Of a stretch of 64,000 nucleotides of DNA, positions 2,418 through 40,269 are shown one piece after another. How positions within the stretch are numbered: the stretch's first letter is position 1; each line of letters begins with the position of its first letter. This stretch comes from Neoechinorhynchus agilis (lineage: Eukaryota; Animalia; Acanthocephala), in the NCBI GenBank assembly GCA_051530055.1, contig CM121342.1, positions 7,820,691-7,884,690 of the forward strand, written 5' to 3'. The notes under the pieces are model-generated. The model was not told where the DNA came from, did no database searches, and saw only the letters and a program-made list of their open reading frames with translations. The position numbers were made by a program, and so were the translations under genes.

Positions 2418-4200
2418 TCAGCCTGAACTTCTGCACTTATCCGCGCGGCGGATATTAACATTGAGTTTTGCATACATACATACATTGCATACAGGTCGTA
2501 TATTGTCTAGACATGTCGCTATTCTCCTGCCGAACATCAGCTCCGATGGTGTTTTGCCGGTGGTCTTATGAGGTGTCTTCCGATATGCTAGGAGAAGCTT
2601 CAGAATATCCTTATTTCGGTCATTAAGCGTCTTTATATACCTCTCCGCCAGTCCATTAGTTTTCGGATGATATGGCGTTGATCGTACTGCTTCGATTCCG
2701 TTCGTGACTTGAAAATTGGGGACCGTTATCGGAAACAATCGTTTCTGGGATACCAAACCTCACAAACATTTCGCGTAATCGATTGACAACGCTTTCTGTT
2801 GAGAAATTGGTGCCAAACCATATTTCGGGCCATTTCGTGTATGCATCTACTGCCACCAAATACCATTTTCCTTCGATTGGTCCTGCTATGTCCACATGCA
2901 CTCGCTTGCAACTTGTGGTATATCCCAATTAATCAATGGTACTTCACGTGCTTCAGGGCGTAATCGTTGACAATTTTCACACGTCTCTACTTTCCGGAGA
3001 ATATCTCGATCCAACTCAGGCTACCAACAATAATTGGCGTTTTCACCAGGGTGTCATTGATGCATCATTTCCAAGAAATGGCTTTGGAGTAACTCTGGAA
3101 CCAACATTCTTTGATTATACATTGGTATGCCATCTTCTAGGCTAATCTCCTATCGTTTGTTGTAAATAGCTGCCTGTACTTCTGTGCATTGTTTTGGCTA
3201 TCCTTCGTTCACATAATGTTTCACTTTCGATTTCTATGCTCAAATCTAATCTCTTAGTTTTTTCCGTTTGAATGAGTTTTATCAATTTGATTTCAACAGC
3301 ACTGATCATATCGTTCGCTGTCTGATCAGGCATCCTAGAAAGCGTATCCGCTACTGTATTATCGGCTCCTGGAACATGATGAATCTCGTATTCGTATTGT
3401 CCCACGAAGAGTGCCCAGCGTACAATTCTATTATTTGTCAACTTCGGCAATTCTCTTTTTCTTCCAAAACTATACTCCAATGGCTTGTGATCAGTTTGTA
3501 ACTGAAAACGGCGCACATACAAGTATCCGTGGAAATATTTCACTTCATATACTACTGCCAATGCTTCTTTTTCAATGGACGAATAATTCTGTTCTGCTGA
3601 TTTCAATAATCTCGACGCGAAAGCTATCGGAACTAGACCATAAGATGCGCGATGAAACAACGCCGCGCCGAGTCCTCTTTCGCTTGCATCGCAACTTAAC
3701 GTTATTGGCAATCGTTGATCGAATAGCATGAGTTCTTGACTATTTTTTAAAACTTCCTTAATATTTTTGAAAAATTGCTGGTGTTCGTCTGACCAATTCC
3801 ATGTGCTCTTTGCTGAAGCCAACCAATAAAGACGGGAACAAATCGGTTATGGAAGTTCGCTAACCCGAGGAATGCTTTCAGTTCTTTTTGTTTCGCGGAA
3901 TGGCCGCATTCGTGAGAGCTCTGGTCTTGTCATCGGTCACGCAGATTCTATTGTTCTTGAACTTATAACCAAGATAATTCACTTCGTTTTTCATAAATGA
4001 ACATTTCTTCGGTGATATTTTTAGATTGACATCACGAAGACGTTCAAACACTTGCTCTAATATTCTCCAATGTGTAGCCATGTTTTCGGTTCCTACGATA
4101 ATGTCGTCCAAATATGCACATACTCCAGATATTCCTTTGAACATATTATCGACATAATTCTGAAAGATGGCTGGCGCCGCGGTGTTTCCAAGAGCGCTTG
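2418..4200 (-). mobile_element. Decayed Ty3/gypsy LTR retrotransposon pol (RT, RNase H, integrase)
   Basis: AYLDDIIV at 3878-4144; RNase H motifs CDASERGLGA, YSSIEKEALA and TDHKPL at 3142-3822; HHCC zinc finger remnant at about 2930-3080; integrase core VHVDIAGP and YHPKTNGLAER at 2418-2928. Confidence 0.92.
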
Positions 4201-5134
4201 TAAGGTTGACCCGAAATGATTGGTCATTATGGAAAAACGAGCGAATTTATAGGGAGGTGCGAGGTCGAGGAAGGATGAAACGAATCAGGATTACGAGTGT
4301 TGTGCGAATCGTTTTGATTGTTTTATGAAAATAGCATCAAGGCATTCGATGAGAGGGGGAACGTCAGTTGTGCAAATTTTAGATGCTCTTTTATGAAACA
4401 TTTCAAGTCGACGGATTTGAGATTTGGAAAGGTTGCAAAAGACGGGGGAGCGTAAAATAAAGTTGAAGTAAAATTTGGAGAGATCGGGTGAAGGGATTAC
4501 TAATTGTCGGAGGCGTGAAATTGGAGACCCAGAATTCTTAGGGAGGTGACTCGTAGGATGTCATTTAGAATCTCGGGGGAAGATGTAGGGTTGTGGGAGA
4601 TTGAAGGGATCATTTCGAAATATTTAGAGAAATTAAGGTAGAGTTTGTGATTGGTGCAGAAATCTTTTATGCGTTTGATTTCGTTAGAAGTTAAAGAAAG
4701 AGAGAGGTGGGTGGTGATTGAGTGATGAGGGTGACATCGTCGCCGTATAAGAAGAGTTCAAAGTGAGAGGAGAGATGTTTGAAGTTGTTTAGGAAAATAT
4801 TAAAACGAAGTGGTGACAGCAAGTTGAGATACGCCTTTGGTGAGGGATACAGTGATCGAGGAGGTAGATCGGCAGTGAATGTATTGTTTGCGATTGTGAA
4901 TGTAAGATTCGAGCCAGCGGATCGGCCACAAGTTGAGACCAAAATCGGAGCAAGCCCGGATAAGGAGTGAATGGTTAACGGAGTCGAATGCTTTCGCTAA
5001 GCCCAGTTGAATGAGACGAGTGACATGAAATCGATTATTGTCAAGGTTACGTAGGAGCGTGATATAAATGCAGAGTAGGGCATCTTTTGCCGAAAATCTG
5101 GATCGGAAGCCGAATTGTAGCGGCGATAACTTGT

Positions 5135-5610
5135 TAAAGATAAAATCCATGCGTATGTGGAAGTGGGGAAAATTATATACCCAAAAATCACTTTAATTGA
5201 AATATTTCGTCCAATTACGCTGGACGTCTTGAGTCAATTATCTGAAAAGGAATTCGGCAACCTCATTGTCTCATCAGGAAGTATCCTCAACTTTAGGGGA
5301 AGAAACAGGACACGAACTCCGATGTTTTTTCCCACTCTTTGACTACGGGCCAAAAGATCGATATTAACGACGCATATTTGTTGGTACGCAATGACCATAA
5401 GGTTGAACGTGTTATTATCGAGGCCATGTTCATTCAGGGAACTAATACTTTCGAGGGAAACAAGATAGATTATTGCCTAAAGTTGAGGATACCTCCGGAT
5501 AAGACATTGAGGTTGCCAAATTAATTTTTAAATAATTGACTGAAGAAGTCCGGTGTGATTGGACGAAATATTTCAATTAAAGTCATTCTTGGGTATATAA
5601 TTTTTCCCAC
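5135..5610 (+). mobile_element. 5'-truncated Penelope-like insertion: inverted arms around a GIY-YIG C-terminal fragment, 12-bp TSD
   Basis: GCGATAACTTGT occurs at 5123-5134 and 5611-5622, and is single-copy in the uninterrupted LINE copy near 38.62 kb. Inverted arms at about 5163-5297 and 5477-5610. ORF 5339-5524 (IDINDAYLL...ERVIIEAMFI) resembles a PLE GIY-YIG end. Confidence 0.8.
5534..5578 (+). ncRNA. Minimal type I hammerhead ribozyme
   Basis: AATTGA-CTGAAGA-A-GTCC(GGTGTGATT)GGAC-GAA-ATAT-T-TCAATT: perfect 6-bp stem I, intact core, palindromic ATAT stem III. Predicted cleavage after 5572. Confidence 0.8.
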
Positions 5611-7232
5611 GCGATAACTTGTCTTTGAGAAGTGAAGGAAGGCGAGAACATTTTTCGATGATTTTTGAAAGAGTGAGCAGAATGGAAATTGGACGGAATG
5701 ATTCGGCCAAAATAGGATGCCCATTTTTCGGAAGAAGGATAACTTTAGCAGTTTTGAGCCCTGAGGGGGAGATGTCATATAAAAAGCTGAGGTTTATAAT
5801 GATGGTGAGAGGGCCTATCAGTTCGGGGATGATGTAGTGAAGGGACCAGTTTGGGATTTCGGATTGAGAGGACGAATTTCAAAGTAATTTCTTGAGATAT
5901 TGGAGGACTTGACTCTTCTGAATACATTTCTTTTATCTCTGCTCCTTCCGGCCAATCATCTGAAGGTCTAATTTCTGTATTCAACACATCGCGCAATCCA
6001 TCTCTAATATCTACATTCATTTCGAATGAACTGTCCTATTCTCTATTTAAATTTTTCTTCAATCGCCGGCATTTCACTGTTGCCAATCTGTACATACAAC
6101 CCGGTTTCATTCATCGTCCAGCCATTAAGAATATTGTGAAATGGCTTCCCAAACCAACATTGATTTTATTGCTGGCAATTTCAATGACCCTTCGACGAAA
6201 TGAACCAATATGAGCTTTCTTCATCTCTTACATCGTCTTAGCATAATATACCGAAAAACGCCCATTCATTCTTAGACCTTATTATGCATAGAAAATATTT
6301 AAAATTTTTACTTCAAATAGAGCGACAGGTGTATTTCTTTAACCTAGCTGGCCACGATGCTTTAATATGGTCCATCGGAAGTAACAGTACTTTAAGGAGA
6401 GTTATACACTTGTCCCCTCTAAACATTGCTCTGTTCAGATCAGTTAACCAATTACTTCTATCGCGGAATTATTTAACCAATAATTTGAATTATGCCCTTC
6501 CTCAAATTAGTTGTTTCATCAATAATACAGCTAAGCTGTTTCTCTACCAAGCACAGAGGGTTTTCTAGACCTTATAAAAGTAGACCATTTCGTTTTATTA
6601 GGCGTCAACTGTATCAAGCAAAATAATACGGAAACGATCTTCTTATAAAAGTGCTTTCTAGGCTATATTGGGCAGCTCGCTGTAGACAACAAATGGCGTT
6701 CGACGGCGCTTTTTTGAATCTTTAAACCCTTTCTCTTCGAAGTGGTGGAATATGATTTTGAAGAAAAAATTTATCAATTGGAAATCGAAGCTTTCCTCTT
6801 GGCTAAAAACCTCCACTTTGGACCAGATACTAACTTCTATCTTTGTTTTTAGGCACCCAAACGACCTTCGCCCGATCTCCCTGTAGAATCTACGAACGGG
6901 ATCAAGCGCATAAACTCAATCTTTTTGTCACGGAGCACAATTAATCTGTCCGTTCAGCGTTGGTAGCGATGCTCCATGCCGTGTTCCTCATAGCCTAATT
7001 GCCAGGATTCACACTACGCTTTTCTCGAAATCCTTTTATTACGACGACGATGATGTCGCCAAGACCTTATTTTACCCTGTTAACGGAGTTCCGCAAGGAT
7101 CGCCGTTCTCTCCTACTCTATTCCTTCTAGCATTTCAATACACGGTACAAAACATTCCTTTTAATGCTAGCTTTTGTGATAAAATCTCTGAGCAAATACG
7201 ATGAAACTCTCAATCGAACAGTCCATGGAGTA

Positions 7233-7445: not shown

Positions 7446-7898
7446 TCCATGGAGTATCTAAACACTTTACTGCCTCACATGAACCTTTGTTTTAATTTAG
7501 CAAAAACAAAATGTATCATCCGGCTCAATGCGTATACGCAGAGATCTTAAAATATTCCTTTCTAAACTTTTATCCAACAACTCTCAGTCCTTACTGATTA
7601 ATTCTTTTATACACTACAATTCACGTATCCTCGGGCACACGATTACAATGAATTTATCCCCTAGGACAGGCATTTCCAAAATGTATAAATTGAGGCTGAG
7701 TTCTCTGGAAGCCTGGTTTTTTATTCTAGAGATCGCCTTCCCGAACACAAGCAAGTATTTATCCAAGCGTTTTTCAATCAAATTAATTCGTTGCCACAAG
7801 CTTGGGCTCGATTTCTGAAAGATTTTTGCCTGCAACGGTGCGATCGATGGACATCTAACATACAAATCTGATAAAGACACCTGATTGCGAACCGTTTC

Positions 7899-10800
7899 AT
7901 GCGCAATTTTCGTTGTAACGAAAAAAGCGTTGTTTCTGGTGATTTCCTTTCGAGACCTCCCGATCATCCTGATGATCGTGCAGGTTTGGATGTCGGTGGT
8001 TCGCTAAGCTGTAACAACTTGCGAATTCCAATGTCCTTGGAGAAGCGAGAGCAGTTGCGCTCTGATCTCGAGCATCAATCTCAAGTCCTGGTAAACAATT
8101 CCCAGTTGACATCGACAAAGCAACAATTTCCAAAATACTCTACCGACAAAAGGACGGCCTTTCATAGCCATTTTTAAATCCAAACCTATCCTACCCAAAC
8201 AAATCATGTACGACCAAGCAGTAAGTCCGTGGACTCGGACCTTCAAGAACGATGGTATTAAAAGGATCGATCACATGACATATTACGCCGGCACCCTACG
8301 AATCTACCTGACTTCACACAATTGGTTGGATCACTTTGTCAAGTTTTCGAAATCTAACCTCCCTAAAGAAGTCTACGATATTACGTCCAGTTCTCAAAAA
8401 GTTCAATTTCTGGTTAAAGGTGTTGAACCTTCTCTCAGCAAACAAGAACGGAACGAGTTCGAACAAACTTTTGGATGCAATATAAAGTTCTAAACTCAAG
8501 AAGGACGGGCCAACCTATTCCTATTGCCATGGTAGAAGGACAATGGAATGTGCGTGATGACTTATGTTCTCAACAATTTTGCTCCTTCAACTGCTTCGAA
8601 ATTAACTTCGTGATGAAATAAAACTATGAGCAAGATGATTTCATCTTTCCGCAATGCAATATCTGTCAGCATTGGGGCCATTGGTGCCAACGCTGCCCCA
8701 ATCCTTCTCACAAAAAATGTTGTCACTGTGGGGATTCCTCTCACAGTTCGGATCAATGTACCAGTTCAAATAAACATTGCCCAAATTGTCAAGGACAGCA
8801 TTCGCCTTTTTACAAAGGATGCCCAGAATTCAAAAATTACTGGGCCTGGGCTCAGAATTCTCTTATTAACGCCGTGGAAAAAGCTCATTACTACAACTAA
8901 GCAAGTAGCGCCTAAACTCAATTCATTGCTTCCAACACCCTCCTTTCGACAAGACGCCAACTCTAACTTCTCAGGATTTTCCGGTAAAGTGCCCTCTACT
9001 CACGTGGTAACCATGGAGCTGCTAGAGAGCAAATTAGATGAAGCTTATAACAAGATTCTAATGATTATGCAAGCTCGTTTTACGGAGGCAATGTTGGCTT
9101 TTGAAACAAAGATGAGCGTCTTAATTGATAAGTTAATGAACATTCCGACTATTTTTTCCCCGTGTTTACCAGAACAAAGCTCTACAACACTCAAAAGAGC
9201 GAATGTGTCTGGAGGGGTTGCACGAGCAGCCAAAAAGCCGAATGGTGGCTCTCGCTCACAGCACGAGGATGATGTTGTGATGGATGAAGATCAATCAACT
9301 TCTGAATTCGTTGCAAGAATAATTGAAACCCAATCCAGGCTGATCGACAACGGAACAGCCAATTTGATTTCAAATGCCAATGCGAAGAAACTTTGACTCG
9401 ATGGCTCAGGAGAAGCTAGGCAATGTTAAGGTGTTGCAGTGGAACTGTGGGGGTGCGACCAACCTTTTTAAGCTCACTCGATATTTACCAGGAATATCCA
9501 TAGCTCTCTTTCAAGAGTCAAAAAGCGTTTTTAATTTAGAGCAACTATATGTTCATCTACCCCTTTTAAAGTCTTCGGTTTTTACATCTTTCGTTCATCC
9601 TCCCTATGGACTTGCCACACAAAGCCTAATTTCCATTTTTCAATCTTCCCTTGTTTCCTCACTGATCATGTCCTATTCCTCTGAGGAATTGTCTTACAGT
9701 ATTTTTAAAATACTTTTCAAAAAGAACTATCTCTCTTTTGCGAATATTTACATAAGACCAGGTCTCATTCATCGTTCGCATGTAAAAGACAAAATCAAAT
9801 GGCTCCTAGGGGCTAACATCGATCTCATTGTGGGAGATTTTAATGATCCATCCTTGAAATGGTCTCGGGCCATTGTTAACGCTGTCAATCTTTCCCATTC
9901 TCTTATCATGCCTAACAATCCTTCCTTTCACAATATTTCTACCAACAAACACTTCTTTTTAGATCTAGTAATATTGAAGAAAATTTTAAACCTTTCAATC
10001 GAATATGATCGCCAAGTCTCCAATTTTGTCCTCTTAGGACACGACATCTTGATTTGGTCCATTGGTCCCTTTGACAGGCTGCGCAAAGTGTATCACTTAT
10101 CCCCTTTAAATTTAGCGTTTTTTCGGCTAGTTTGCTAGAAAATTTTCTTACACCTAGGTTCTGATTGCAAATTGTCAGATATTTTACCTTTAGCAAACTC
10201 TTTAATTAATAAAGCCGCTAATCCTTTCTTATGCCACACCGTTAAAACCTTCTCTCGCCCTTATGTGAGCCGATCACTTCGTTTTCTTGGACGCCAACTC
10301 TATGTAGCCCAACGCTCTGCGGATACCCTTCTATGCAAAACCCTATCAAGCCTTCTATGGGCTGCCCGTTGCCGACAGCGACAACGAGGGGATGCTGATT
10401 TTCTTGCTACACTCAAACCTTACTCTTCAAACTGGTGGCGTACCTTTTCTAATAAGGGTAAAGTACCTTGGAGATAAAAATTACGGCTTGGTGAAAATCC
10501 TCGACTTTGGAGGATATTCTTACTCAAACTTTTGACTTCCATTCCGCAGGCTCCTCGACCAACGTGCCGTCAATTTGTTTTCGTAAACTAATACGTAATC
10601 GTACTGATATCTAATTAAATGACATTCTCCAAGTTTGGTCCACAAATCCGAAATTGGGCTCGGCTAACGGCTACCCCGGGACGAAAATTTTCACCTTGCT
10701 TCCAAGGGACTGCATAATCCTCCTTGCAAAGGCTATGCTGTGCTGTTCGCCATACGCGTGGTGGGATATCAATGTTTCTAGACGCATTTTCTTGGTCAAA

Positions 10801-11820
10801 AATGGCGGGAAGGCTATTGTAGAACCAAAGGATGTTCGTCCAATATCACTTCAAAATCCTCTAGTTAGCATATATGAACGCGCCCATGCAAATAGGTTGA
10901 GATCTTTCATTCATGAACATTATTGCATCTCTCCGAACTGTCATGGCTTTCTAAAAGGGAAATCAGTTCATTCTGCCCTTGCAGAGGTTTACTCCAATTT
11001 TTCCTGCTCTAACCATCCCACGAGACCCATTCTTGCCGTGAACATTTCTCAAGCTTTTGATAAGATTTCTTTTATTATTGAAATGCTTGAATTTTTCAGT
11101 CTACCTCACAATTTAATTACACGTGCCCACAATATTTTATTTACAAAATCTTTTTACTACGAAGACGACGCCTCAATGACACTTTACTACCCGTCCAATG
11201 GTGTTCCGCAGGGGTCACCTCTGTCACCAATTCTTTTCCTTATGGCATCACAATACTTGATTCAGAATTTTAAAGTTCGGGCCTCGCTCACCTGCTACGC
11301 GGATGATTTTACTTTTGTCATCTCCACCCACAAAGCAGCTAGAATGAAACTCCTGATTGAGCAATGTATTGATTTTCTTAACTCCTTTTTACCTAAAATG
11401 AACTTATCGTTGAATAAGTCGAAATGTTTATGCATTTTTAAAGTTCGCTCAAGCAAAATTAGGAAAGATTTAATCCTTTTTCAACAATTTAGTGAACAAC
11501 CCTGACACCTCTTCTTCAGGTTTTACGAATACACCCCTTAAAATTAAAATATTGGGTCACACCTTTACTGCTTATCTCTCGCCTAGATTAGATTTGAATA
11601 AAATAAAAAAATGCTCACTTTAGCATCGAAAAAGACGAAGCGCGCCGTTACTCTCGGGTTAAACGCTAATCAATGCCAAACTATTTACAAAAGCTGGAGC
11701 ATTCCTGGCCTGGTCTTTTTCTCTCGAGGTCGCCCCCCGGAACAAAAGGCTTTACTCATCAAAATGTTCCGCGAAAACCTTAATACCCTGTCTTTCTCCT
11801 GGGATGGCAGAACGTTTTGA
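7899..11820 (+). mobile_element. I/Jockey-group LINE, near full length, frameshifted (ORF1 with three CCHC knuckles; ORF2 APE + RT)
   Basis: About 8645-8830 translates CNICQHWGHWCQRC, CCHCGDSSHSSDQC and CPNCQGQHSPFYKGC. APE at 9374-10138 (LQWNCGG, VGDFND). RT at 10654-11505 (RPISL, GVPQGSPLSP, YADD). Confidence 0.9.
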
Positions 11821-11956
11821 TGAGTAAAGCCTTTTGTTCCGGGGGGGCGACCTCGAGAGAAAAAGACCAGGCCAGGAATGCTCCAGCTTTTGTAAATAGT
11901 TTGGCATTGATTAGCGTTTAACCCGAGAGCAACGGCGCGCTTCGTCTTTTCCGATG
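11624..11956. repeat. Long near-perfect inverted repeat at the LINE 3' end (~146-bp arms, 40-nt loop)
   Basis: 11624-11769 is the reverse complement of 11810-11956 with only a few mismatches. Confidence 0.95.
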
Positions 11957-12031
11957 TTATGGTCTAGTTGAACGATACTGATTAGTTGTTTTGGTTTTTC
12001 CTCTCATACTGCCACATGGTGAATAAATCTG

Positions 12032-12056
12032 TATTATTATTATTATTATTATTATT
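12032..12056 (-). repeat. (AAT)n microsatellite tail at the end of duplicated cassette A
   Basis: About eight TAT units on the + strand, directly abutting the segment duplicated at 30.4-30.93 kb. Confidence 0.9.
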
Positions 12057-15000
12057 GCGATCCGCTACACTGAATAATCTTTTATTGTTGTTGAAAGTTA
12101 CATAACATGGATCCTATGGACGATTGACCGATCTGAACCTTTTTGTTCGCTTAGTCGGCTAAAGTGGACCACACGAAGCGTAGTCCGCCAAACATCAATG
12201 TTTTAAAAGCTGAACGGCATTTATAAAACTCATCACGTTTTCAAACTAGAAAATATTTATATCTCAGACTAAGACGCAGCGATGATGTTAGACCTATCCA
12301 TAAAAAAAGACACGAAACTCCCAGGAAAGCGCAGTCATAACGAAAGGCATGAAACTTCCTCCTGGGATTTTTTCTAAAATCGGATTACCGTGTGCTTCTG
12401 GACAGAACTCCCGCACAATATTCCCAACAAATGACATTTCATTTGAACTGGCGATGTCGTGATTGGCGTTTGATGTTCATTATCAATGGATCTTGATGAT
12501 AAACCAGAACCGCCGCAGCGTGAATTACGGAGTTCATGGACCCTGAGAACTCCTGTATTCGTCAGGACCAAAGCGTCGAATCGTACCAATATTCAATACA
12601 TCGTGTTTGGAATTGTTTTCCATTTTAATTGCATTGTTCAGTCTCCCATTTCGTGATTTGCTTTTTCCGATGAATTCACCTTTATTTGGTATGGAGCTCC
12701 GAGAATTCTTCACTCTAAACTTTTCTTATATGCCGACAATGTCACAATCTTCACAAAATCACCCTAAACATCTAACGATGTCATCTACATCAAAGATTTC
12801 TGCACTAATCCAATACTCTACCTGAACTTCTATAAATGCTTCGATTTGATCTCCTCACTCTCCCGCATCCAACGAGCCACCTCCCTCAGAATTCTGGGTC
12901 TCCAATTAAAATCAAATCTGAAATGAGACTACCACATTTCCTCGAAGGCCGAATTTGATCGGAATTCTTTTGACAAGTTAAGCTAGAAATCTAAAACGGA
13001 GAATCACGATTAATGTCCTGCTGCCATTTGCACCCCAATGCTTAAGGAGATGACCGAGATGGTATCCGCGGGTTCTGGGTAGTGAAATGACTGAGACTTG
13101 ATGGGATATTTTATTTTAGCCTAATTTATAATGAACAAAAACCCTCGTCCATTGAAGAAGTTGCTTATGACAAAAAGCTTAATTAAAATTCTATAGACCC
13201 TTTCATTAGTAAGCAGGTAAGAAAAACTAATTTTTATTGTTGTCAAAACTATTTTAAATTCCAACAGCTAATAAATCTAAAATCCCGGGTAATAATGTCT
13301 CGTCCATTTTAGTCGGATAAAATTTCTTCAATGTAATACCGAATCTATATTATGTTATTGTATAATTTTTCCCGGTATAGGTGAGGTCGATAGATTTTCT
13401 TGATCTTTTTCTGAAATCTTCCATTTTTAAGAGGAGTCCTTTTCGCAGCTGCCATTTCGCTAGCTGTTTCAGGCTTGACGTCCAGCTTAGTGTCTACGAC
13501 GACGGCATCTGTTTGTCCCTCGATCTCAAATTTTAGTTCGATTGATTCGATTGGTGCAATTTCGCTCGCGAACTGGGACTTGGCATCTTCTTTATTGCCA
13601 ACGCCGACGGCATCCTTTTCTAATTCAATCTGAGATATGAGTTCGATTGACTCGATCGCCGCCATTTCGCTGGCTGATTCGGACTTAACATTACCTTTAA
13701 TGTCCACGGCGACGGCATCGATTTCTTCTTCAATCTGAGATTTGAGTTCGGATAATGCGACTGTTACAATTTCGTTGGCAGATTTAGACTTTACATCCTC
13801 TTTAGTGTCAACGGCATCGATTTCTCCATCAATCTGTGATTTGAACTCGGTTGATTCGATTGATACCATTTCGTTGGCAGATTCATACTTGGCACCACCT
13901 TTAGTGTCCACGGCGACGGCATCGATTTCTTCGTCAATCTCAGATTTGAGTTCGATTGATTCGATTGCAGCCAATTCGCTTGCAGATTCGGACTTGACGC
14001 CCACTTTAGGGTCCTCGGCGACGGCATCGATTTCTTCTTCAATGTGAGATTTGAGTTCCATTGACTCGATTAATGCCATTTCGCTGACAGATTCGGACTT
14101 GACATCCTCTTTAGGGTCAACCGCGATGTCATCGATTTCTTCTTCAATCTGAGATTTGAGTTCCATTGATTCGATTGCAGCCATTTCGCTTGGAGATTTG
14201 GACACGGATCCTTCTTTAGGGTCCTCGGCGACTTCATCGATTTCTTTAATCTGAGATTTGAGGTCGGTTGATTCGATTGCTACCATTACGTTGGCAGATT
14301 CACACTTGGCATCCTCTTTAGTGTCCACGGCGATGGCATCGATTTCTTCTTCAATCTGAGATTTTAGTTCGTTTGATTCGATTGCTGCCGTTTCGCTGGC
14401 AGATTCGGACTTGACGTCCTCTTTAGTGTCAACGGCGATGGCATCGATTTCTTCTTCAATCTGAGATTTGAGTTCCATTGATTCGAATGCTGCCATCTCG
14501 GTTGCAGACTCGGGCTCAACATCCTCTTCGGTGTCCGCGGCGAAGGCATCCTTTTCTCTTTCAATCTGAGATTTGAGTTCGATTGATTCGATTGCGGCTG
14601 TTTCGCTTGCACATTCGGACTTGGAATCCTCTTTAGTGTCAACGGCATCGTTTTCTCCTTTATTTTCAGCCGGATTATATGTAAATGGCAATTTTGAATC
14701 AATATTCAACAATATGCTATTGTATGAAATTTTCCGGTATAGGTCAGGTCGACACATTTTGTTAATCTTGTTTTGAAATTTTCCTTCATTAAGAGAAGTC
14801 TTTTGCGTATTTCCTTTTCTGTCGGTTAATATCCTTGCACTGTCTTCGAATGGTATCGTTTCTGAAGAGCCGATTGCGGAGTTGTTGGACCGCCCTGAGG
14901 CAACAGGCATTTCCATTTTATTCACCATTTCAATTGTCTCAAATGCGCCAGGTATAGGCGTTCCAAGTTTGAGTTTTGTGGAGTTACTTTCTTTTTTAAC

Positions 15001-16018
15001 GACATGAATAACAGATTTGAGTTTGGTTGTTTCGATTGCTGTCATTTCGCTAGCAGATTCGGACTTGACGTCCTCTTCAGTGTCCACGGCGACGGCATCG
15101 ATTTCTTCTTCAATCTGAGATTTGAGTTCGAGTGATTCTATTGCCCCATTTTCGCTTGCAGACTCAGGCATGACATCCTCTTTATTATTCGAGACGACGG
15201 TATCGATTTCTCCTTTCGTTTCTACTGAATTAGATGAAAATGGCAATTTTGAATCTATATTAAACAATATGTTATTGTATGAAATTTTCCGGTATAGGTG
15301 AGGTCGGTTCATTTTGTTAATCTTGTTCTGAAATCTTCCATTTTTTAGAAGAGTCTTTTTCTTATTCCCTTTTCCATCCGCTATTATCTTTGCAATGCCT
15401 TCGAATGGTTTCGTTTCTGAAGAGCCGACTGTTGAGTTGCTGGACTGCCCTGAGACAATAAGCGTTTCCTTTTTATCAACCATTTCAATTGTCTCAAATG
15501 CGCTAGGTATAGGCGTTCCAAGTTTGGGTTTTGTGGCATTACTTTCTTTTTCAACGACATGAATTAGGGGTTTGAGTTCGGTTGCTTCAATTGATGCCAT
15601 TTCGCTAGCAGATTCGGGCTTGGCGTCCTCTTTGGTATTGATGGACTCACCTTTTCCGACGGCGATATCCACTTTGGTATGCATCCGTTGAACTTCGTCC
15701 TCAATTACAATGTCTCCATCAACCATTTTAGTACTGCTGATTGGGTTCAGGGCGTAGCATCGGTTTTTGGTCGAAAAGGTTGAAAGGCTGCTGATCAGTA
15801 GCACGGCGGTGAAAATTTTCATCGGAGTAATGGTTGGAAGTATACCCTAAAGTAGAGATACAGCTCAAAATTACCTACTCTACGGGATGCGCAAGCGATT
15901 TAGAAATGTTATTAAATACTTGAACAATATTGACGTTTTCATAAAAATTACTGTTTACGTCTTGGTATGTTTACAAAAACTCATTGTTGACATTATGTGT
16001 CCAGAAAAGATTTTCTTG
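12054..16018 (-). repeat. Segmental duplication cassette A (secreted-protein gene plus flanks)
   Basis: Reverse complement matches 27513-30926 throughout the flanks, and matches 17604-~20480. Confidence 0.92.
13345..15822 (-). CDS. Predicted secreted acidic repeat protein, paralogue A (825 aa)
   Basis: Uninterrupted ORF. Signal-peptide-like N-terminus MKIFTAVLLISSLSTFSTKNRCYA. About twelve 35-aa Glu/Asp/Ser-rich repeats and two ~100-120-aa modules with a basic end. Confidence 0.9.
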   Translation of the reverse strand: MKIFTAVLLISSLSTFSTKNRCYALNPISSTKMVDGDIVIEDEVQRMHTKVDIAVGKGESINTKEDAKPESASEMASIEATELKPLIHVVEKESNATKPKLGTPIPSAFETIEMVDKKETLIVSGQSSNSTVGSSETKPFEGIAKIIADGKGNKKKTLLKNGRFQNKINKMNRPHLYRKISYNNILFNIDSKLPFSSNSVETKGEIDTVVSNNKEDVMPESASENGAIESLELKSQIEEEIDAVAVDTEEDVKSESASEMTAIETTKLKSVIHVVKKESNSTKLKLGTPIPGAFETIEMVNKMEMPVASGRSNNSAIGSSETIPFEDSARILTDRKGNTQKTSLNEGKFQNKINKMCRPDLYRKISYNSILLNIDSKLPFTYNPAENKGENDAVDTKEDSKSECASETAAIESIELKSQIEREKDAFAADTEEDVEPESATEMAAFESMELKSQIEEEIDAIAVDTKEDVKSESASETAAIESNELKSQIEEEIDAIAVDTKEDAKCESANVMVAIESTDLKSQIKEIDEVAEDPKEGSVSKSPSEMAAIESMELKSQIEEEIDDIAVDPKEDVKSESVSEMALIESMELKSHIEEEIDAVAEDPKVGVKSESASELAAIESIELKSEIDEEIDAVAVDTKGGAKYESANEMVSIESTEFKSQIDGEIDAVDTKEDVKSKSANEIVTVALSELKSQIEEEIDAVAVDIKGNVKSESASEMAAIESIELISQIELEKDAVGVGNKEDAKSQFASEIAPIESIELKFEIEGQTDAVVVDTKLDVKPETASEMAAAKRTPLKNGRFQKKIKKIYRPHLYREKLYNNII

Positions 16019-16826
16019 GCCTCCAAAACAAGTCGTCTTCTTAAATTTTGTTCTGTTTCTATAAGGTTGGTGCCACCAAAATCCGCTCGATGCTTACACG
16101 TCTCTTGATGATTGGAGATTGCCGACGAATGCTCAAATAGCCTACAAGCTTGCTTATGTTGAGCGACCCTCTTCTCAATGTCTTGCATCGTTTGCCCGAA
16201 ATGAACTTTCTCACACTATTCACAGTGCATTCGGTAGATCCCATGAGTTGGCTCAATTCTACCCTTCCTCTTGAATGTGCTTCTGAGAGCGATTCCTTTA
16301 GTATTGTATATACGAATTCCAGCCTTCTCATTCATAATGGAGTAAATCATTTGATTCGTGTCATCATCAATGAAGTGCACTCTTTCGAAGCATACAGGCT
16401 CTGCAGACGAATTTTGTTGTTATGCGGATGGTAGTTAATGCCTCTGATTTATAATCCATTTGGGATATCGCCTTATTTTCGGCTGCTGTACTATCCTTTC
16501 CCTTTCCTTATTCCATGCAAATCGAGTAGAGGAAATAAGAAAAGCTCTTCGGGAGTACGAAGTAACAGCCGAGATTTTATACTTCATCAGTTGGTGACTT
16601 GGCCAGTGTGGTAGTCCCATGATATGTTCTCCTTGCGATAAAGTGAAGTGCTAACTTTGCTATGTGCAGAACGCTTGACAAGGACGTCCAGGAACGAGAC
16701 TTCATTTATGTCCTCTTCATTGACTGTAAACTGTATGTGTGGATCCTGACTGTTAAGTTCACCATTTAGAGAATCTCTGTTGTTGTTTGAATCAGTCAGA
16801 ATGAATGCATCGTCTACATAACGCTA
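15955..16826 (-). mobile_element. Penelope-like element, RT C-terminal half + GIY-YIG endonuclease (decayed)
   Basis: Minus strand reads RYVDDAF...IQFTVNEEDINEVSFLDVLV...YRK, then GQTMQDIEKRVAQHK...SAISNH...RRLVLEAKKI. Confidence 0.88.
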
Positions 16827-16829
16827 CCG

Positions 16830-17170
16830 CCGATTCACATGACTATGAAGCTCCAAGAACGTCAATTTAAAAGTATAGATCGCTGAACAACATATAACCA
16901 TGAACAACTTACGGAAGCTTGAACAACTAAGACCAAGAACACTCGAAGAGCGCGGATACTTTATGAATAGATCAAAACACACCTTTTCCTCAAGGGACCA
17001 TAATTTGTTGAACAAGGGACCGGACTATATTATGAAGCATCAAATTCGATCTACTAAAATACGATGTGATACAGAGCTTCTTATAAACTCACATCCAGAT
17101 CTGATGAGTTCAATAGTGGCTCACGATACGAAAGCTCGTAGTCACAACGATCAGGAAGACGACTAATTAA
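16830..17170 (+). mobile_element. Penelope-like ORF N-terminal fragment, inverted relative to the adjacent RT
   Basis: ORF 16900-17166 (NRSKHTFSSRDHNLLNKGPDY...IRCDTELLI) resembles, from recall, the N-terminal N-x-S...LL-x-KG motif of PLE ORFs. Confidence 0.6.
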
Positions 17171-17367
17171 ATTTTGATTCATATTTATAATCTGCTCGAT
17201 AGTTCGCGCTACTATAACTCCTTTGGAATGTTCTTAAGGACTTAAATTGTGAACAGTTACAACGAAAATTTCATCTATTAACACATTATTGTCGATGATC
17301 TGAGTGGGTATTTCAAATAAATCCGGATCGTTGTACGTAAAATTGGTTCTCTTTTGCCATCGCCAAC

Positions 17368-17625
17368 TTGACAAAACAGTTAGACGTGGCCACAAGCCAG
17401 ACATTTCGAAAATTGACGAGGTGAGAAGCCATCAGTGATTGGTTTTTGAATTGTGAAAGAGAACCCAAATAAGCGAATCCTAATAGTAGGACCACCTTTT
17501 GAGGTGGCCATGTCAATGAGAGCTTTAACCAACAAACCAAATATTGGCAAATCACTATTGGAAAGATATTTAATGGGAGTGAATCCGTACTCCTTTTTCG
17601 TTTCAAGAAAATCTTTTCTGGGCAT
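17368..17625 (-). mobile_element. LINE ORF1-like fragment with degenerate zinc knuckle; second copy at 27042-27534
   Basis: FSPRQFSKCLACGHV*LFC. Shared upstream of paralogues B and C. Confidence 0.5.
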
Positions 17626-20480
17626 ATAACGTCAACAATGAGTTTATGTAAACATACCAAGACGTAAACAGTAATTTTTATGAAAACGTCAATATTGTTC
17701 AAGTATTTAATAACATTTCTAAATCGCTTGCGCATCCCGTAGAGTAGGTAATTTTGAGCTGTATCTCTTCTTTAGGGTATCCTTCCAACCATTACTCCGA
17801 TGAAAATTTTCACCGCCGTGCTACTGATCAGCAGCCTTTCAACCTTTTCGACCAAAAACCGATGCTACGCCCTGAACCCAATCAGCAGTACTAAAATGGT
17901 TGATGGAGACATTGTAATTGAGGACGAAGTTCAACGGATGCATACCAAAGTGGATGCCAAGCCCGAATCTGATAGCGAAATGGCATCAATTGAAGCAACC
18001 GAACTCAAACCCCTAATTCATGTCGTTAAAAAAGGAAATAATGCCACAAACCCCAAACTTGGAACGCCTATACCTAGCGCATTTGGGACAATTGAAATGG
18101 TTGACAAAAAGGAAACGCCTATTGTCTCAGGGCAGTCCAGCAACTCAACAATCGGCTCTTCAGAAACGAAACCATTCGAAGGCATTGCAAAGATATTAGC
18201 GGATGGAAAAGGGAATAAGAAAAAGACTCTTCTAAAAAATGGAAGATTTCAGAACAAGATTAACAAAATGTATCGACCTGACCTACAACTGAAAATTTCA
18301 TACAATAACATATTGTTTAATATAGGTTCAAAATTGCCATTTTCATCTAATTCAGCCGAAACGAAAGGAGAAATCGATGCCGTCGTCTCGAATAATAAAG
18401 AGGATGTCATGCTTGAATCTGAATGCGAAAATGGGGCAATAGAATCAATCGAACTCAAATCTCAGATTGAAGAAGAAATCGGTGCGGTCGCCAAGGACCC
18501 TAAAGAGGACGTCAAGTCCGAATCTGCCAGCGAAATGGCAGCAATCGAATCAATGGAACTAAAATCTCAGATTGAAAAAGAAATCGGTGCGGTCGCCAAG
18601 GACCCTAAAGAGGACGTCAAGTCCGAATCTGAGAGCGAAATGGCAGCAATCGAATCAATGGAACTCCAATCTCGGATTGAAGAAGAAATCGATGCCGCCG
18701 TCTCGAATAATAAAGAGGATGTCATGCTTGAATCTGAATGCGAAAATGGGGCAATAGAATCAATCGAACTCAAATCTAAGATTGAAGAAGAAATCGATGC
18801 CGTCGCCGTGGACACTGAAGAGGACGTCAAGTCCGAATCTGTCAGCGAAATGGCAGCAATCGAATCAATGGAACTCCAACCTCAGATTGAAGAAGAAATC
18901 GATACCATCGCCGTTGGCAATAAAGGGGATGTCAAGTCCGAATCTGATAGCGAAATGGCACCAATCGAATCAATGGATCTCAAATCACAGATTGAAGAAG
19001 AAATCGATGCCATCGCCGAGGACACCAAAGAGAGCGTTAAGTTCGAACCGGCAAGCGAGATGGCAGCAGTCGAATCAACCGAACTCAAATCTCAGATTGA
19101 TAAAGAAAAGATTGCCATCACAGTGGACACTAAAGAGGATGTCAAATCCGAAACTGCAAGCGAAATGGCAGCAATCGAATCAATGAAACTCAAGTCTCAG
19201 ATTGAAGAAGAAATCGATGCCATCGCCGTGGATACTGAAGAGAACGTCCAGTCCGAATCTGCCAGCGAAATGGCAGCACTCGAATCAATGGAACTCAAAT
19301 CTCAGATTGAAGAAGAAATCGATACCATCGGCGTTGACAATAAAGAGGATGTCAAGTCCGAATCTGCCAGCGAAATAGCAGCAATCGAACTCAAATCTCA
19401 GATTGAAGGAGAAAAGGATGCCGTCGCCGTTGACAATAAAGAAGATGCCAAGTCCCAGTTCGCGAGCGAAATTGCACCAATCGAATCAATCGAACTAAAA
19501 TTTGAGATCGAGGGACAAACAGATGCCGTCATCGTGGACGCTAAGCTGGACGTCAAGCCTGAAACAGCTAACGAAAGTGCAGCTGCGAAAAAGACTCCTC
19601 TTAAAAGTGGAAGATTTCAGAAAAAGATCAAGAAAATCTATCGACCTCACCTATACCGAGAAAAATTATACAATAACATAATGCCGAATGTAGATTCGGT
19701 ATTACATTGAAGAAATTTTATCCGACTTAAATCGACAAGACATTATTACCCGGGATTTTAGATTTATTAGCTGTTAGAATTTAAAATAGTTTTGACAACA
19801 ATAAAAATTAGTTTTTCTTACCTGCTTACTAATGAAAGGGTCTAAAGAATTTTAATTAAGCTTTTGTCATAAGCAACATCAATGGACGAGGGTTTTTGTT
19901 CATTATAAATTGAGCTAACATAAAATATCCGATCATAGTCTCAGCCATTTCACTACCCAGCACCCTCGGATACCATCTCGGCCATCTCCTTAAGCATTGG
20001 GGTGCAAATGGCAGCAAGACATTAATCGTGATTCTCCGTTTTAGATTTCTAGCTTAACTTGTCAAAAGAATTCCGATCAAATTCGGCCTTCGAGGAAATG
20101 TGGTAGTCTCATTTCAGATTTGATTTTAATTGGAGACCCAGAATTCTGAGGGAGGTGGCTCGTTGGATGCGGGAGAGTGAGGAGATCAAATCGAAGCATT
20201 TATAGAAGTTCAGGTAGAGTATTGGATTAGTGCAGAAATCTTTGATGTAGATGACATCGTTAGATGTTTAGGGTGATTTTGTGAAGATTGTGACATTGTC
20301 GGCATATAAGAAAAGTATAGAGTGAAGAATTCTCTTAACGGAAAAAGTAGAAACGCTCCATTTAAATAAAAGTTAATTCATCGGAATAAGGCAAATCAAC
20401 GATTTTAATCGTTAAAAGGGAGACTGAACATTGCAATTAAAATTGAAAACAATACCAAACACGGTGTACTGAATATTGGT
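17604..20480 (+). repeat. Segmental duplication cassette B
   Basis: Shares ~200 bp upstream and the downstream flank with cassettes A and C. Similarity decays after about 20334. Confidence 0.9.
17800..19710 (+). CDS. Predicted secreted acidic repeat protein, paralogue B (636 aa)
   Basis: Same first ~50 aa as paralogue A. One basic-ended module and about eleven 35-aa repeats. Confidence 0.9.
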   Translation: MKIFTAVLLISSLSTFSTKNRCYALNPISSTKMVDGDIVIEDEVQRMHTKVDAKPESDSEMASIEATELKPLIHVVKKGNNATNPKLGTPIPSAFGTIEMVDKKETPIVSGQSSNSTIGSSETKPFEGIAKILADGKGNKKKTLLKNGRFQNKINKMYRPDLQLKISYNNILFNIGSKLPFSSNSAETKGEIDAVVSNNKEDVMLESECENGAIESIELKSQIEEEIGAVAKDPKEDVKSESASEMAAIESMELKSQIEKEIGAVAKDPKEDVKSESESEMAAIESMELQSRIEEEIDAAVSNNKEDVMLESECENGAIESIELKSKIEEEIDAVAVDTEEDVKSESVSEMAAIESMELQPQIEEEIDTIAVGNKGDVKSESDSEMAPIESMDLKSQIEEEIDAIAEDTKESVKFEPASEMAAVESTELKSQIDKEKIAITVDTKEDVKSETASEMAAIESMKLKSQIEEEIDAIAVDTEENVQSESASEMAALESMELKSQIEEEIDTIGVDNKEDVKSESASEIAAIELKSQIEGEKDAVAVDNKEDAKSQFASEIAPIESIELKFEIEGQTDAVIVDAKLDVKPETANESAAAKKTPLKSGRFQKKIKKIYRPHLYREKLYNNIMPNVDSVLH

Positions 20481-21322
20481 CCAAATCTTAACAGAGCGAT
20501 CATTTCTATTGTTTGAAACTCTCATCGCAACCACACTTGTCAACTGATCGCATTGACGAAAACGGACGCACACCGTCAATAAATGAGCGGACATTCCGCG
20601 AACAACGTGGAATCTCCATCCGACAATGAGGTCTCTTTAAATCGATTACGCGGCTGCAATTGTTAGGTGGTTCCTTGGCGCTTGAGAAATTCTTAAAAAC
20701 CTGAAAATGTTGTTTCCCGCTGTGGTCCGCGAGGCGCGGGAAGTTTTCTGACAGAAAATGAATATATTTCACAATTTTGACGTGTGGTGAATATACTCGC
20801 CCGGTGAGAAATCATTTTATTGTACTGAAATATTTTGAAAGGGGAAATATCGCCTTATTAATCATCTAGAAAGGTTTTTTCACTTGCCTCGCGAAATATT
20901 TCAGAAGAAAATGATTTTTAACCGAGATTATCTTCACCACAAATCAAAATTTACCATCTCGATGGATTTTCTCGATATGATTAAAAAGGTTTCCGGTTAT
21001 GGTTCTTTTCTATATTTTGTCTAATAGGCCCCGATTGACAGGTCCGCTACTTCCAACAAGGTTCGGGGACCGTGTGCCCCTGCTCGTAAACCCTGCACTG
21101 TATCGTGTGTGTTCTATTGATTTTAACTACGTCACTGGCAGGTAGTTTTACGCTGAAATTCGCTTTATTGCCTTCCATTGTATTGGGCGCAAAAAGCGCC
21201 TTCTAGGATTTGCCTTCTCCATAAATTCCGTGCCTTCAAAATCTTTGCGATGTTGCATAGACGTCGACAGACCTGTTTATGTTGGGTGACTCTTTTCAGT
21301 GAACGTGTTATCTCGTTGACGT

Positions 21323-21764
21323 TGCGGTATGATAAGAAAACTAGTTTTCACCAGTGTACTTTATTGTAATATTTGTGCTGACGAACTTGTCCTTTTAAAA
21401 CTATCCGAGAGAGAGATTTTCTCTCATCCTCTCTCTTATGAACGTCTATTCTCTGCTCAAATCAATGAACAGTAAACGAGAATCGACCAAGTATTCCACT
21501 CTTATTGATGTTGCACTAAAAAGTGATTTGAACGAGCTACTGGAACTCTAAAGGACTTATTAAGTGAAGCGGTGAGCACAGAGCGGAGGCTATTAAGTGT
21601 GAAATGGAAACTATTAAAAGTGAATAGTTGGTCGAAGTCAAAAAGTACAAAGGGAAAACGCTAACGGTTCAAAGGGGCAGACAAAGGTTTCAAAGCTGAA
21701 TTCTAAGAAGCAGAATAAAGGTTTACAGAAATCGGATAGCAAAGTGGCCGCAAAGGAGAATACG
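21323..21764 (+). repeat. ~440-bp dispersed duplicate (other copy 36971-37413), probably LINE ORF1 or 5' region
   Basis: Near-identical sequence at both positions; Lys-rich partial reading frame. Confidence 0.75.
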
Positions 21765-33633: not shown

Positions 33634-33775
33634 TTATTGTTTAGAGGTCTTCACCCGGTAAAGAGTTTATTAAAGACGTTCTGTGAACGTCGTCGGGTCT
33701 TCTATTAATAACTAACAAACTGATAAAAAATTATTTACAGGGTAAAGACTTCTAAACAAACTCACCATATCGACA
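33634..33775. mobile_element. Decayed member of the 27.1 kb foldback family
   Basis: Shares TTATTGTTTAG..GTCT...GGTAAA...TTTATTAAAGACGTT and the CATATCGACA end. Confidence 0.7.
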
Positions 33776-36763: not shown

Positions 36764-37439
36764 GTATTAAATGCAACGACATGCAATTACATTTAAATTA
36801 GTTTACATTTGCGAAAAATTTAATCAAGTGTATTTTTTGTTCGATTGGAAGACCTAAAGCACGAGAGCCAGAGGTAAAAACGTTGTCGACATTAAACTAT
36901 ATTTGATACTAAGGCTTATTTTTATTAGGTAAAGGTCGTGAATATCCTTAATTTTTCATATACTCTAAAGTGCGGTATGATAAGAAAACTAGTTTTCACC
37001 AGTGTACTTTATTGTAATATTGGTGCTGACGAACTTGTCCTTTTAAAACTATCCGAGCGAGAGATTTTCTCTCATCCTCTCTCTTATGAACGTCTATTCT
37101 CTGCTCAAATCAATGAACAGTAAACGAGAATCGACCAAGTATTCCACTCTTATTGATGTTGCACAAAAAAGTGATTTGAACGAGCTACTGGAACTCTAAA
37201 GGACTTATTAAGTGAAGCGGTGAGCACAGAGCGGAGGCTATTAAGTGTGAAATGGAAACTATTAAAAGTGAACAGTTGGTCGAAGTCAAAAAGTACAAAG
37301 GGAAAAACGCTAACGGTTCAAAGGGGCAGACAAAGGTTTCAAAGCTGAATTCTAAGAAGCAGAATAAAGGTTTACAGAAATCGGATAGCAAAGTGGCCGC
37401 AAAGGAGAATACGGTTAATAATAACACGTTTATTGAATA

Positions 37440-39800: not shown

Positions 39801-40269
39801 AGTGTCCGATAAGGTTCGAAACGTCTTTAATAAATAATCATTTACCGGATGTAGAGCTAAAAAATAATTCCAAGTTAAAGTCACCTTTGAGTATCATTTT
39901 TTAACCTTATTTTGAACTAGCATAATAATGCCATCTCAGATTATGTATTTAATTTTAAATCTGGTTCAAAACCTTGATATATGTGCAAATGACTCCTAAA
40001 TTCCCTTAATTAGGATTTGAGCGGCCTTTGTGCCATCACGCACGGCACCTGCGAATCCTAGGCATTCTTTATTTAAAGCTAAATTGGTCGAAACGAGCTT
40101 GTTGTGAAAGAAATTTTATAAAAAAGTAATGGAAAACGGGTAGTAATAAGCATTAAATCGGTAGCTTATGGGAGATAAAAAGAAATTGTGATAAGTGATT
40201 TATGCAAAATGACATCGTATCTAGTAAAAAGACAGGTAAAGATTCTCCTACTCATTTCGACATTTAGCC

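Follow-up and report, generated by a model that had tools for sequence, protein, structure and literature searches.

A Penelope-like element remnant at a gene-duplication breakpoint in Neoechinorhynchus agilis: probably a chance neighbour rather than a gene carrier

When a multicopy host gene lies directly beside a retroelement, with an open frame running from one into the other, has the element carried the gene? This question is raised by a locus on chromosome CM121342.1 of Neoechinorhynchus agilis (Acanthocephala), analysed here as a window of 64 kb, by which we mean the whole stretch of DNA. Two of its genes stand head-to-head around a spacer that contains sequence of a Penelope-like element (PLE), and an earlier note had considered that the gene might travel as 3' cargo of this element. 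The reading that we favour, with a probability of about 0.8, is that a PLE remnant lies beside genes duplicated locally at the DNA level, that the breakpoint of one copy fell in the PLE by chance, and that no capture, carriage or mobilisation was involved.

The locus contains three paralogous genes, and their description as related genes without introns was correct: all are intron-free ORFs. Paralogue A (13345-15822, - strand) is uninterrupted over 825 codons and forms the head-to-head pair with paralogue B (17800-19710, + strand, 636 codons), while paralogue C (27709-29652, + strand) has 647 codons; repeat numbers vary among the copies. Paralogue A has a hydrophobic N-terminus, likely a signal peptide as judged from its sequence, and arrays of 105-nt (35-aa) acidic repeats. 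A Pfam search assigned no family to the three gene products, and a search of the called proteins (best 8000 low-complexity candidates) found no homologues of A, B or C outside this 18-kb cluster. The gene may be lineage-specific, encoding an acidic-repeat protein that is probably secreted. The copies diverge by 1-3%, and three-way site counts give a near-star tree, with 16 differences unique to A, 18 to C and 16-40 to B, the range for B being without or with its noisy distal 160 nt.

The spacer between A and B contains two PLE arms. The inverted arm (16019-16862, - strand) starts in the RT domain 12 codons before YVDD (16820-16809) and runs through thumb and linker into a GIY-YIG endonuclease ending ..RRRLVLEA, with four in-frame stops and at least one frameshift (~16600). 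Its RT-thumb-linker-GIY-YIG identity is given by alignment to an RVT_1-bearing PLE protein (P0001) and 119 further proteins of this kind. In addition, a PLE HMM matches at 16853-16626 (i-E 5.9e-13), PLE endonuclease fragments match with E down to 1.6e-14 and tblastx finds a PLE of the same genome, all of which confirms the PLE RT-endonuclease previously placed on this strand of the spacer. A first word-indexed protein search with the stitched RT-endonuclease gave one match. The endonuclease conserves GIY..C..C..Y.GQT..R..QH..SAISNH..H..E, and Pfam GIY-YIG matches it at E 0.0029, under the gathering score; the domain is cut after the catalytic-Glu region, and the conserved Asn-bearing tail is absent. 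The proposed end of the RT arm at about 16826 proved to be only an in-frame TAG (16826-16824), as homology to another PLE copy of the genome, L003, reaches 16862. The inverted arm has the same orientation as gene A, so that a read-through transcript is physically possible.

The forward arm (16863-17148, + strand) is a fragment of the PLE N-terminal region and includes an ORF at 16900-17166. It is recognised only through L003, a related near-full copy 1.7 Mb away in which the head-to-head architecture is intact: window positions 16861-17148 match the N-terminal region of L003 at 4518-4803, both on the + strand, with 53-60% amino acid identity (E 7.9e-27), in line with the N-terminal piece previously read here. 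Neither a PLE HMM made from 19 distant full-length PLEs nor hhalign recognised this piece (1.5 bits; probability 1%, within the shuffle range), and Pfam searches of the N-terminal ORF and of the B/C upstream ORF returned nothing useful. A metagenome scan for closer PLEs found only a bacterial homing-type GIY-YIG by a ThyX-like ORF (L002) and was of no use. The sequence at 17149-17367, with no strand assigned, is unique to the spacer, being neither PLE nor common to C.

An inverted 5'-truncated copy beside a forward copy is a known insertion architecture of PLEs (PMC8557442; PMC3846280). L003 displays it with arms at 2654-3990 and 5137-6473 that are 99% identical and with pLTR-like sequence at 4141-4204 / 6491-6584. 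The internal inversion that had drawn attention to the spacer is thus real, but it is the standard head-to-head arrangement of PLEs (PMC8557442; L003) and no sign of capture. Like canonical EN+ PLEs of the Penelope/Poseidon-Neptune-Nematis type, the spacer copy has a PLE-type RT (YVDD; partial), thumb, linker and fused C-terminal GIY-YIG in this order, Cys motifs between GIY and YIG with the R..H...H...E series, and an inverted arm abutting a forward N-terminal piece as in L003. Unlike them, it is a relic with stops, a frameshift and truncated arms. The - arm corresponds to approximately positions 1537-2334 and the + arm to 530-813 of a 2.4-kb unit, with no inverted repeat in common; compared with L003, about 920 bp are missing across the head-to-head junction, and the forward arm is cut at about position 813. 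As an insertion the copy is not intact, having no intact ORF, no complete 3' end and no TSD, and neither a pLTR nor a tail extension is detectable. No Rfam hammerhead ribozyme family reached the gathering score in the window, or E<=10 in 15000-18600, as expected if the PLE terminal regions were deleted. The spacer therefore holds the decayed remnant of one head-to-head PLE insertion, of which both outer ends and the junction centre have been lost.

How does the inverted arm end? At 16018 the spacer copy switches from PLE endonuclease to KKIFSGHIMSTMSFCKHTKT and a stop, and the likeness of this ending to the PLE tail is at shuffle level. The GIY-YIG frame had been said to read straight across 16018, and it is indeed open for 20 codons, but this length is at chance level and there is no PLE homology past 16018; these codons would belong to the upstream region of the gene and be open in the PLE frame by chance. 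Endonuclease relatives continue past ..LEA with a conserved tail, IHI..NPTMEGNKSN.., and 120 distant PLE proteins end ..AEA-LYIKxxxPxLNxQ..LFN. The 11 closest relatives, six of them N. agilis copies, are 35-71% identical to the arm, but their alignments stop at query residue 57-63, the breakpoint; from there on the relatives share IHI..NP(T)MEGNKSN.TL.LP. Comparison of the window tail with the tails of these relatives gives P 0.32-0.96 against shuffles, and the relatives' tails score 36-122 among themselves. The possibility that other PLE copies share the spacer ending was thus not borne out, all relatives examined carrying the conserved tail instead.

The window itself provides a control for a real PLE 3' end. 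A second, independent PLE relic (20773-21297, - strand) comprises the last ~310 bp of an element; it encodes, from 21297 to 21057, the genuine endonuclease tail ..TMEGNKANFSVKLP.. and a stop, and it has pLTR-like pieces at 20892-20984 (+) and 20773-20841 (-). Two further window relics in all (21057-21297, 5303-5446) keep the genuine tail. Homology to another PLE copy, L004, stops exactly at 16018, and the L004 ORF continues for 183 nt. Against L003 and L004, the 150 nt before the breakpoint score 47 and 41 (shuffle maximum 17-18) and the following 196 nt reach 11 and 8. This comparison of tails at the nucleotide level has low power, since L003 and L004 themselves show no DNA alignment between their tails; the missing-tail argument rests on the protein-level tail comparison. 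Downstream of the other PLE copies (L003, L004, window 21057-21297 and 5303-5446) there is neither the gene nor the block upstream of it. The L003 element runs 149 bp past ..LEA to its 3' end at 6473, and about 150 bp are absent from the spacer copy. Since this much of the PLE 3' end is missing, the 16018 junction cannot be a retrotransposition (target-primed reverse transcription) junction. It is a rearrangement breakpoint, at which base 16018 is a 1 nt microhomology between the PLE arm and the gene block. The suggestion that the PLE came to lie beside copy A only later, by insertion or recombination, is consequently supported for recombination and not for insertion. A location of the missing tail beyond A's distal end was searched for there and rejected.

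On the gene side of this junction, about 200 bp had been reported as common to all three genes. The shared sequence is 196 bp long and ends at the same base in each copy (A 16018 = B 17604 = C 27513). The A copy (15823-16018, - strand) is 98.5% identical to the C copy (27513-27708, + strand) and 96.9% to the B copy (17604-17799, + strand), as aligned among the three, and comparison of the A copy with the PLE tail, 3' end and pLTR revealed no similarity. B and C do not break at this base, as had been thought, but continue together for 236 bp (17368-17603, + strand; in C, 27042-27112 plus 27340-27512), a block split only in C by a 227-bp foldback MITE (27113-27339; TSD ATGAGT[G/T]A). The whole C unit (27042-29652, + strand) thus consists of the B/C block with the MITE, the 196-bp block and the ORF. 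The supposed "ORF1-like" fragment in B and C is unsupported, as the 236-bp block has no match in Pfam, PLE-HMM, LINE-ORF1 or other comparisons and no recognisable coding or TE homology. Because B and C share 236 more upstream bases that are not PLE, the base equivalent to 16018 is a breakpoint only in A.

The boundaries of the three duplicated units are staggered. Upstream and distal boundaries lie at 16018 and at most 7480 for A, at 17368 and 20480 for B, and at 27042 and at least 31075 for C; B matches C from 27042 to 30395 of C, A matches C in inverted orientation from 27513 to about 31075 of C, and the distal ends of the A and B units are more than 500 bp apart in extent. Two of these six boundaries lie near PLE debris, the second relic beginning 293 bp past B's distal boundary in convergent orientation with B. 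The copies lie within 18 kb, or 24 kb counting flanks. Past the stop codon, A-C homology carries on through over 1.4 kb of non-coding sequence on the 3' side, to about 7480; it is broken by a LINE (7895-12053, + strand; TSD ATTGCGA[A/T]CCG; C site empty) and picks up again on the far side, so this homology is at the DNA level. Both the LINE and the MITE in C were inserted after the duplications that they interrupt. An (ATT)8 at 12027-12050 was considered as a retro-tail of the A unit and rejected, being part of the + strand LINE with its own TSD, beyond which A-C homology continues. The end of the A-C homology has neither a poly(A)/microsatellite tail nor a PLE end, no direct repeat >=7 bp was found as a TSD at the ends of the A, B and C units, and no end of any gene unit has pLTR-like sequence in comparison with L003 4141-4204 / 6491-6584 and window 20892-20984.

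Clustered copies, non-coding flanks with differing ends, no retro-signatures and single-copy-specific TE insertions with TSDs together mark DNA-level segmental duplication. The locus resembles local segmental duplication of secreted repeat genes in its staggered boundaries, non-coding flanks, varying repeat number and post-duplication TEs, and the only oddity is that one boundary lies inside a TE relic. We infer that A, B and C are local segmental duplicates whose copied segments had different ends. C has the widest context, and a C-like context may be ancestral on grounds of parsimony, since a single breakpoint is then enough, where otherwise two would have to coincide in one base, given the near-star tree. 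The proximal duplication or deletion breakpoint of A (16018/16019) would then have fallen inside the PLE endonuclease coding region, after the ..LEA codons, and the role of the PLE would at most be that of a landing site or of one side of a deletion.

Could the PLE nevertheless have moved the genes? In a 3' transduction, a read-through transcript would have carried the gene, a head-to-head dimer would have put copies on both arms (A and B), and B would later have seeded C. The PLE arm and gene A are adjacent in the same orientation, PLE insertions do form inverted dimers (L003; PMC8557442) and PLEs have mobilised a host gene in the related rotifer Adineta vaga (PMC3846280), yet this scenario is highly improbable and already largely refuted. 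The earlier note had itself named two observations that would speak against gene capture, and both were made: other PLE C-termini are different and mutually conserved, and at the breakpoint neither of the other paralogues borders on a PLE. The junction lacks the PLE's last ~150 bp with its conserved endonuclease tail; with 236 bp of other sequence at the equivalent base of B and C, a second event at the exact same nucleotide would be needed; the disparate distal ends of A and B show no retroelement-type end or TSD; the forward arm by B derives from the N-terminal region and supplies no 3' end; and no dispersed gene copies were found (called proteins; best 8000 low-complexity candidates). Trans-mobilisation between PLE pseudo-LTRs, as for the A. 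vaga NRPS gene, is scarcely credible. That gene is a dispersed copy, framed by direct pLTRs plus an inverted pLTR and flanked by an 8-bp TSD, and its allelic site is empty (PMC3846280). N. agilis shares with this precedent from its sister group a Syndermata host (superphylum-level group) and a multicopy host gene beside PLE sequence, and B even has PLE debris on both sides (16019-17148; 20773-21297, the latter with pLTR-like pieces). Unlike in A. vaga, however, A, B and C have no pLTR-like sequence upstream and no framing TSD, copies are local only, and the PLE piece comes from inside the coding sequence and has no 3' end; moreover, the left and right relics belong to different subfamilies (72-76% versus 86-95% nucleotide identity to L003), and B and the right one run towards each other.

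A chimeric retrocopy, in which the gene mRNA was reverse-transcribed to its 5' end (16018 = TSS) before a template switch onto PLE RNA in the endonuclease region, would account for a doubly truncated PLE piece joined in the same orientation, with 1 nt microhomology, to an intron-free gene unit at its 5' end, and 5'-chimeras of this kind are known for LINE-1. We regard it as very unlikely, because A-C homology extends >1.4 kb past the stop codon to an end without poly(A)/microsatellite tail or TSD, because the 5' end of the PLE arm meets the forward N-terminal piece just as it would in a head-to-head insertion that was already there, a configuration that a template switch would not create, and because B and C, equally intron-free, include sequence upstream of the supposed TSS. 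Finally, the PLE may have acted mechanically, its unstable inverted dimer, or nicking by its endonuclease, provoking a break whose repair duplicated the neighbouring gene in inverted orientation into the A/B pair, with later erosion of the centre by deletions. Inverted repeats can seed palindromic duplications, an inverted repeat of >3 kb has the relic in its centre, and B's distal boundary too has PLE debris close by; if true, PLE dimers would give rise to palindromic gene duplications in acanthocephalan genomes. This too is unlikely, since what remains of the two arms comes from different regions of the element, with no inverted repeat between them, the spacer is asymmetric, with A lacking the 236-bp block expected in a fold-back copy of B, and with at least three PLE relics within 64 kb chance proximity is not unlikely.

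Read as local duplication beside a PLE remnant, the locus documents an N. agilis PLE family with classical head-to-head insertions and adds little beyond annotation. It also illustrates how a frame that stays open through a breakpoint, together with a neighbouring gene in the same orientation, can look like gene capture. Because PLEs do mobilise genes in rotifers (PMC3846280), the explicit criteria used here, namely the element 3' end, pLTRs, TSDs and junction recurrence, are a useful template for screening other loci. Independent of the PLE, the orphan three-gene cluster, with its fast repeat variation and probably secreted products, may interest parasitologists.

The three paralogous genes A, B and C have uninterrupted reading frames at 13345-15822 (minus strand), 17800-19710 (plus) and 27709-29652 (plus), respectively. 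Upstream of the ATG they have a block of exactly 196 bp in common (A 15823-16018, reverse complement; B 17604-17799; C 27513-27708), which the earlier note had put at about 200 bp. A further 236 bp are common to B (17368-17603) and C (27042-27112 and 27340-27512), split in C by a 227-bp MITE-like foldback element (27113-27339; TSD ATGAGT[G/T]A) whose empty site in B is 17438/17439. Downstream, the homology of B ends at 20480 (A 12585, C 30395). That between A and C reaches beyond this limit to 12054/30926, where A carries a plus-strand LINE (7895-12053; TSD ATTGCGA[A/T]CCG at 7884-7894 and 12051-12061) with ORF1 (8626-9396), endonuclease (9374-10138), RT (10654-11505) and AATAAA plus an (ATT)8 tail, and picks up again past the LINE (A 7894-7826 and 7582-~7480; C 30916-~31075). 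C has the widest shared context on both sides, and poly(A) tails, retroelement ends and TSDs are absent from the ends of all three units. Judged by their staggered shared boundaries, A, B and C are DNA-level segmental duplicates. C lacks the LINE at this site (30916-30926), which places the insertion after the A/C duplication.

The final ~150 nt of B's downstream homology (20330-20480 vs A 12585-12735 and C 30245-30395) hold 24 B-specific differences (~16%, against ~1.5% divergence elsewhere), possibly through past gene conversion or through misalignment of clustered indels. The LINE 3' region contains a ~400-bp foldback (~11560-11990), and relatives of the 227-bp foldback lie at 33623-33698, 39806-39877, 50924-50988 and 56054-56127.

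A and B stand head-to-head, and the spacer between them contains a relic of a Penelope-like element (PLE) at 16019-17148. Its inverted arm (16019-16862, minus strand) encodes distal reverse transcriptase (..FLELHSHVNRR*RYVDDAFIL..), thumb, linker and GIY-YIG endonuclease (GIYRMHCE*CEKVHFGQT..RVAQHK..SAISNH..CKH..RRRLVLEA); four in-frame stops interrupt this coding sequence, which also shifts frame near 16600. The arm is identified as a PLE, as the earlier note had read it, by alignment to P0001 (a PLE protein fragment with an RVT_1 domain and GIY-YIG end), a PLE HMM match (i-E 5.9e-13), an exhaustive protein search with matches to E 1.6e-14, and tblastx matches to two loci of the same genome, L003 and L004. 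The supposed truncation of the reverse transcriptase at 16826 is merely an in-frame TAG; homology to L003 extends to 16862. The forward arm (16863-17148, including an ORF at 16900-17166) also proved to be the expected PLE N-terminal piece through its homology to the forward copy's N-terminal region in L003 (E 7.9e-27; ..NRSKHTFSS..LL.KGPDYIM..IRCDTE..); profiles from distant PLEs did not recognize it. Since 17149-17367 and 17368-17603 matched nothing in searches of both stretches, an antisense ORF1-like fragment upstream of B and C is unsupported.

L003, at ~9.50 Mb on chromosome CM121342.1 and 1.7 Mb from the window, preserves the arrangement intact as a PLE dimer (2654-6584), in which a 5'-truncated copy on one strand adjoins a near-full copy on the other. 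Its arms (2654-3990 and 5137-6473) are 1337 nt each, with 99% identity, and the pseudo-LTR (pLTR) is marked by direct repeats spaced 2382 bp apart. Such a head-to-head truncated and forward copy is a published hallmark of PLE insertions (PMC8557442; PMC3846280). Compared with L003, the spacer copy lacks ~920 bp across the head-to-head junction; its forward arm is cut off at about position 813, and its inverted arm is missing the final ~149 bp. The small foldbacks that the inversion had been thought to mirror (27113-27339 and its relatives) are unrelated to the PLE. The L003 ORF is already broken into several frames despite its 99% identical arms and 2382-bp unit; either copying started from a defective master or frameshifts are tolerated by the element. 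At 10369-8882 of the same locus there is a more distant PLE in a better state of preservation (HMM score 263).

The GIY-YIG frame does stay open for twenty codons across the 16018/16019 junction, as the earlier note had observed in proposing that the gene travelled as 3' cargo of the PLE. Chance readily gives a stop-free run of this length where sequence is AT-rich, and the continuation, KKIFSGHIMSTMSFCKHTKT*, does not resemble a PLE tail: against genuine tails it scores no better than shuffles (P 0.32-0.96), whereas genuine tails score 36-122 against one another. After ..AEA, the endonuclease of 120 PLE proteins goes on as LYIKxxxPxLNxQxxSYKLxLFN. The closest endonuclease relatives are annotated N. 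agilis proteins on the same 16.4-Mb chromosome record; alignments of the 11 closest, which are 35-71% identical and include six N. agilis copies, end at query residue 57-63, the breakpoint, and their tails share IHI..NP(T)MEGNKSN.TL.LP, which recurs with a frameshift in P0122. Genuine tails also occur in two other relics of the window, at 21297->21057 (..TMEGNKANFSVKLP..*) and 5303-5446 (..IIEAMFIQGTNTFEGNK..). The tail motif is absent from the other frames of the 196-bp block. DNA homology to L004 stops exactly at 16018; strong alignments with L003 and L004 are given by the 150 nt leading up to the breakpoint but not by the 196 nt that follow, a comparison of low power given that the L003 and L004 tails are themselves unalignable. 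The junction, GAG GC[C] / AAG AAA ATC, shows 1 nt of microhomology. On this sequence evidence, the PLE does not run on into the 196-bp block.

Because the PLE has lost its own 3' end, the junction cannot stem from target-primed reverse transcription of PLE or PLE-plus-cargo RNA. B and C had been thought to break at the same base; both instead continue past it into common non-PLE sequence, and the cargo model would thus require a second event at the identical nucleotide in the B/C ancestor. In the documented case of PLE-mediated host-gene mobilization, in Adineta vaga (PMC3846280), the gene is a dispersed copy between pLTRs, with a TSD and an empty site. A, B and C differ from that case: all copies are local, and neither pLTR-like sequence nor TSD occurs at any end of the units. 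A hammerhead ribozyme is also absent. The capture or cargo model is refuted by what had been specified beforehand, a different C-terminus elsewhere and B and C without PLE at the junction. The sequence observations behind it were largely right, and its stated alternative, that a PLE recombined next to copy A, stands: with the breakpoint confined to A, a single rearrangement there suffices.

A breakpoint inside a PLE relic is unsurprising, since the 64-kb window holds at least three separate ones. The second (20773-21297; 86-95% nucleotide identity to L003), of a younger subfamily, lies 293 bp from the end of B homology and retains the element's last ~310 bp on the minus strand, with genuine endonuclease tail and stop, and two pLTR-like pieces in inverted orientation (20892-20984, plus; 20773-20841, minus). 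In the third (5163-5610), the plus-strand tail (5303-5446; ..ERVIIEAMFIQGTNTFEGNKIDYCLKL..) is flanked by 87% inverted repeats (5163-5297 and 5476-5610). The window as a whole is TE-rich. Three dispersed repeats between B and C have copies 15 kb off (21323-21764 = 36971-37413, 98.9%; 22013-23316 = 39382-38047, 91%, inverted; 24260-24511 = 38052-37826), and an LTR-retrotransposon RNase H fragment (3142-3822, minus; RT_RNaseH_2, E 1.4e-29) and two tRNA genes (31269-31341, minus, and 57504-57576, plus; Rfam 70.2 and 68.9 bits) are also present.

Most likely, a PLE inserted head-to-head and decayed in place, after which a C-like gene would have been copied locally twice with unlike end points, directly to give B and inverted to give A. 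A's proximal end would have been joined within the PLE endonuclease region, either at duplication or when a subsequent deletion took away both the PLE 3' end and A's distal upstream. The LINE would later have entered A's flank and the foldback MITE C's upstream. This order of events is probable rather than proven, A, B and C being almost equidistant. The spacer feature itself is an unexceptional TE remnant on the boundary of a segmental duplication.

The products of A, B and C start alike (MKIFTAVLLISSLSTFST..), likely with a signal peptide. They had no Pfam family matches, and a search of 5.8 billion proteins, covering at most 8000 low-complexity candidates, gave no homologue beyond the window's own copy. 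Acidic repeats of 105 nt (35 aa) make up most of each gene and form higher-order modules whose number varies per copy, with ~11 copies of the 105-nt unit in A and in B vs three 489-nt modules in C. Repeat architectures so strongly unlike, in frames that are all open, suggest that repeats turn over rapidly in this acidic, lineage-specific and probably secreted protein.
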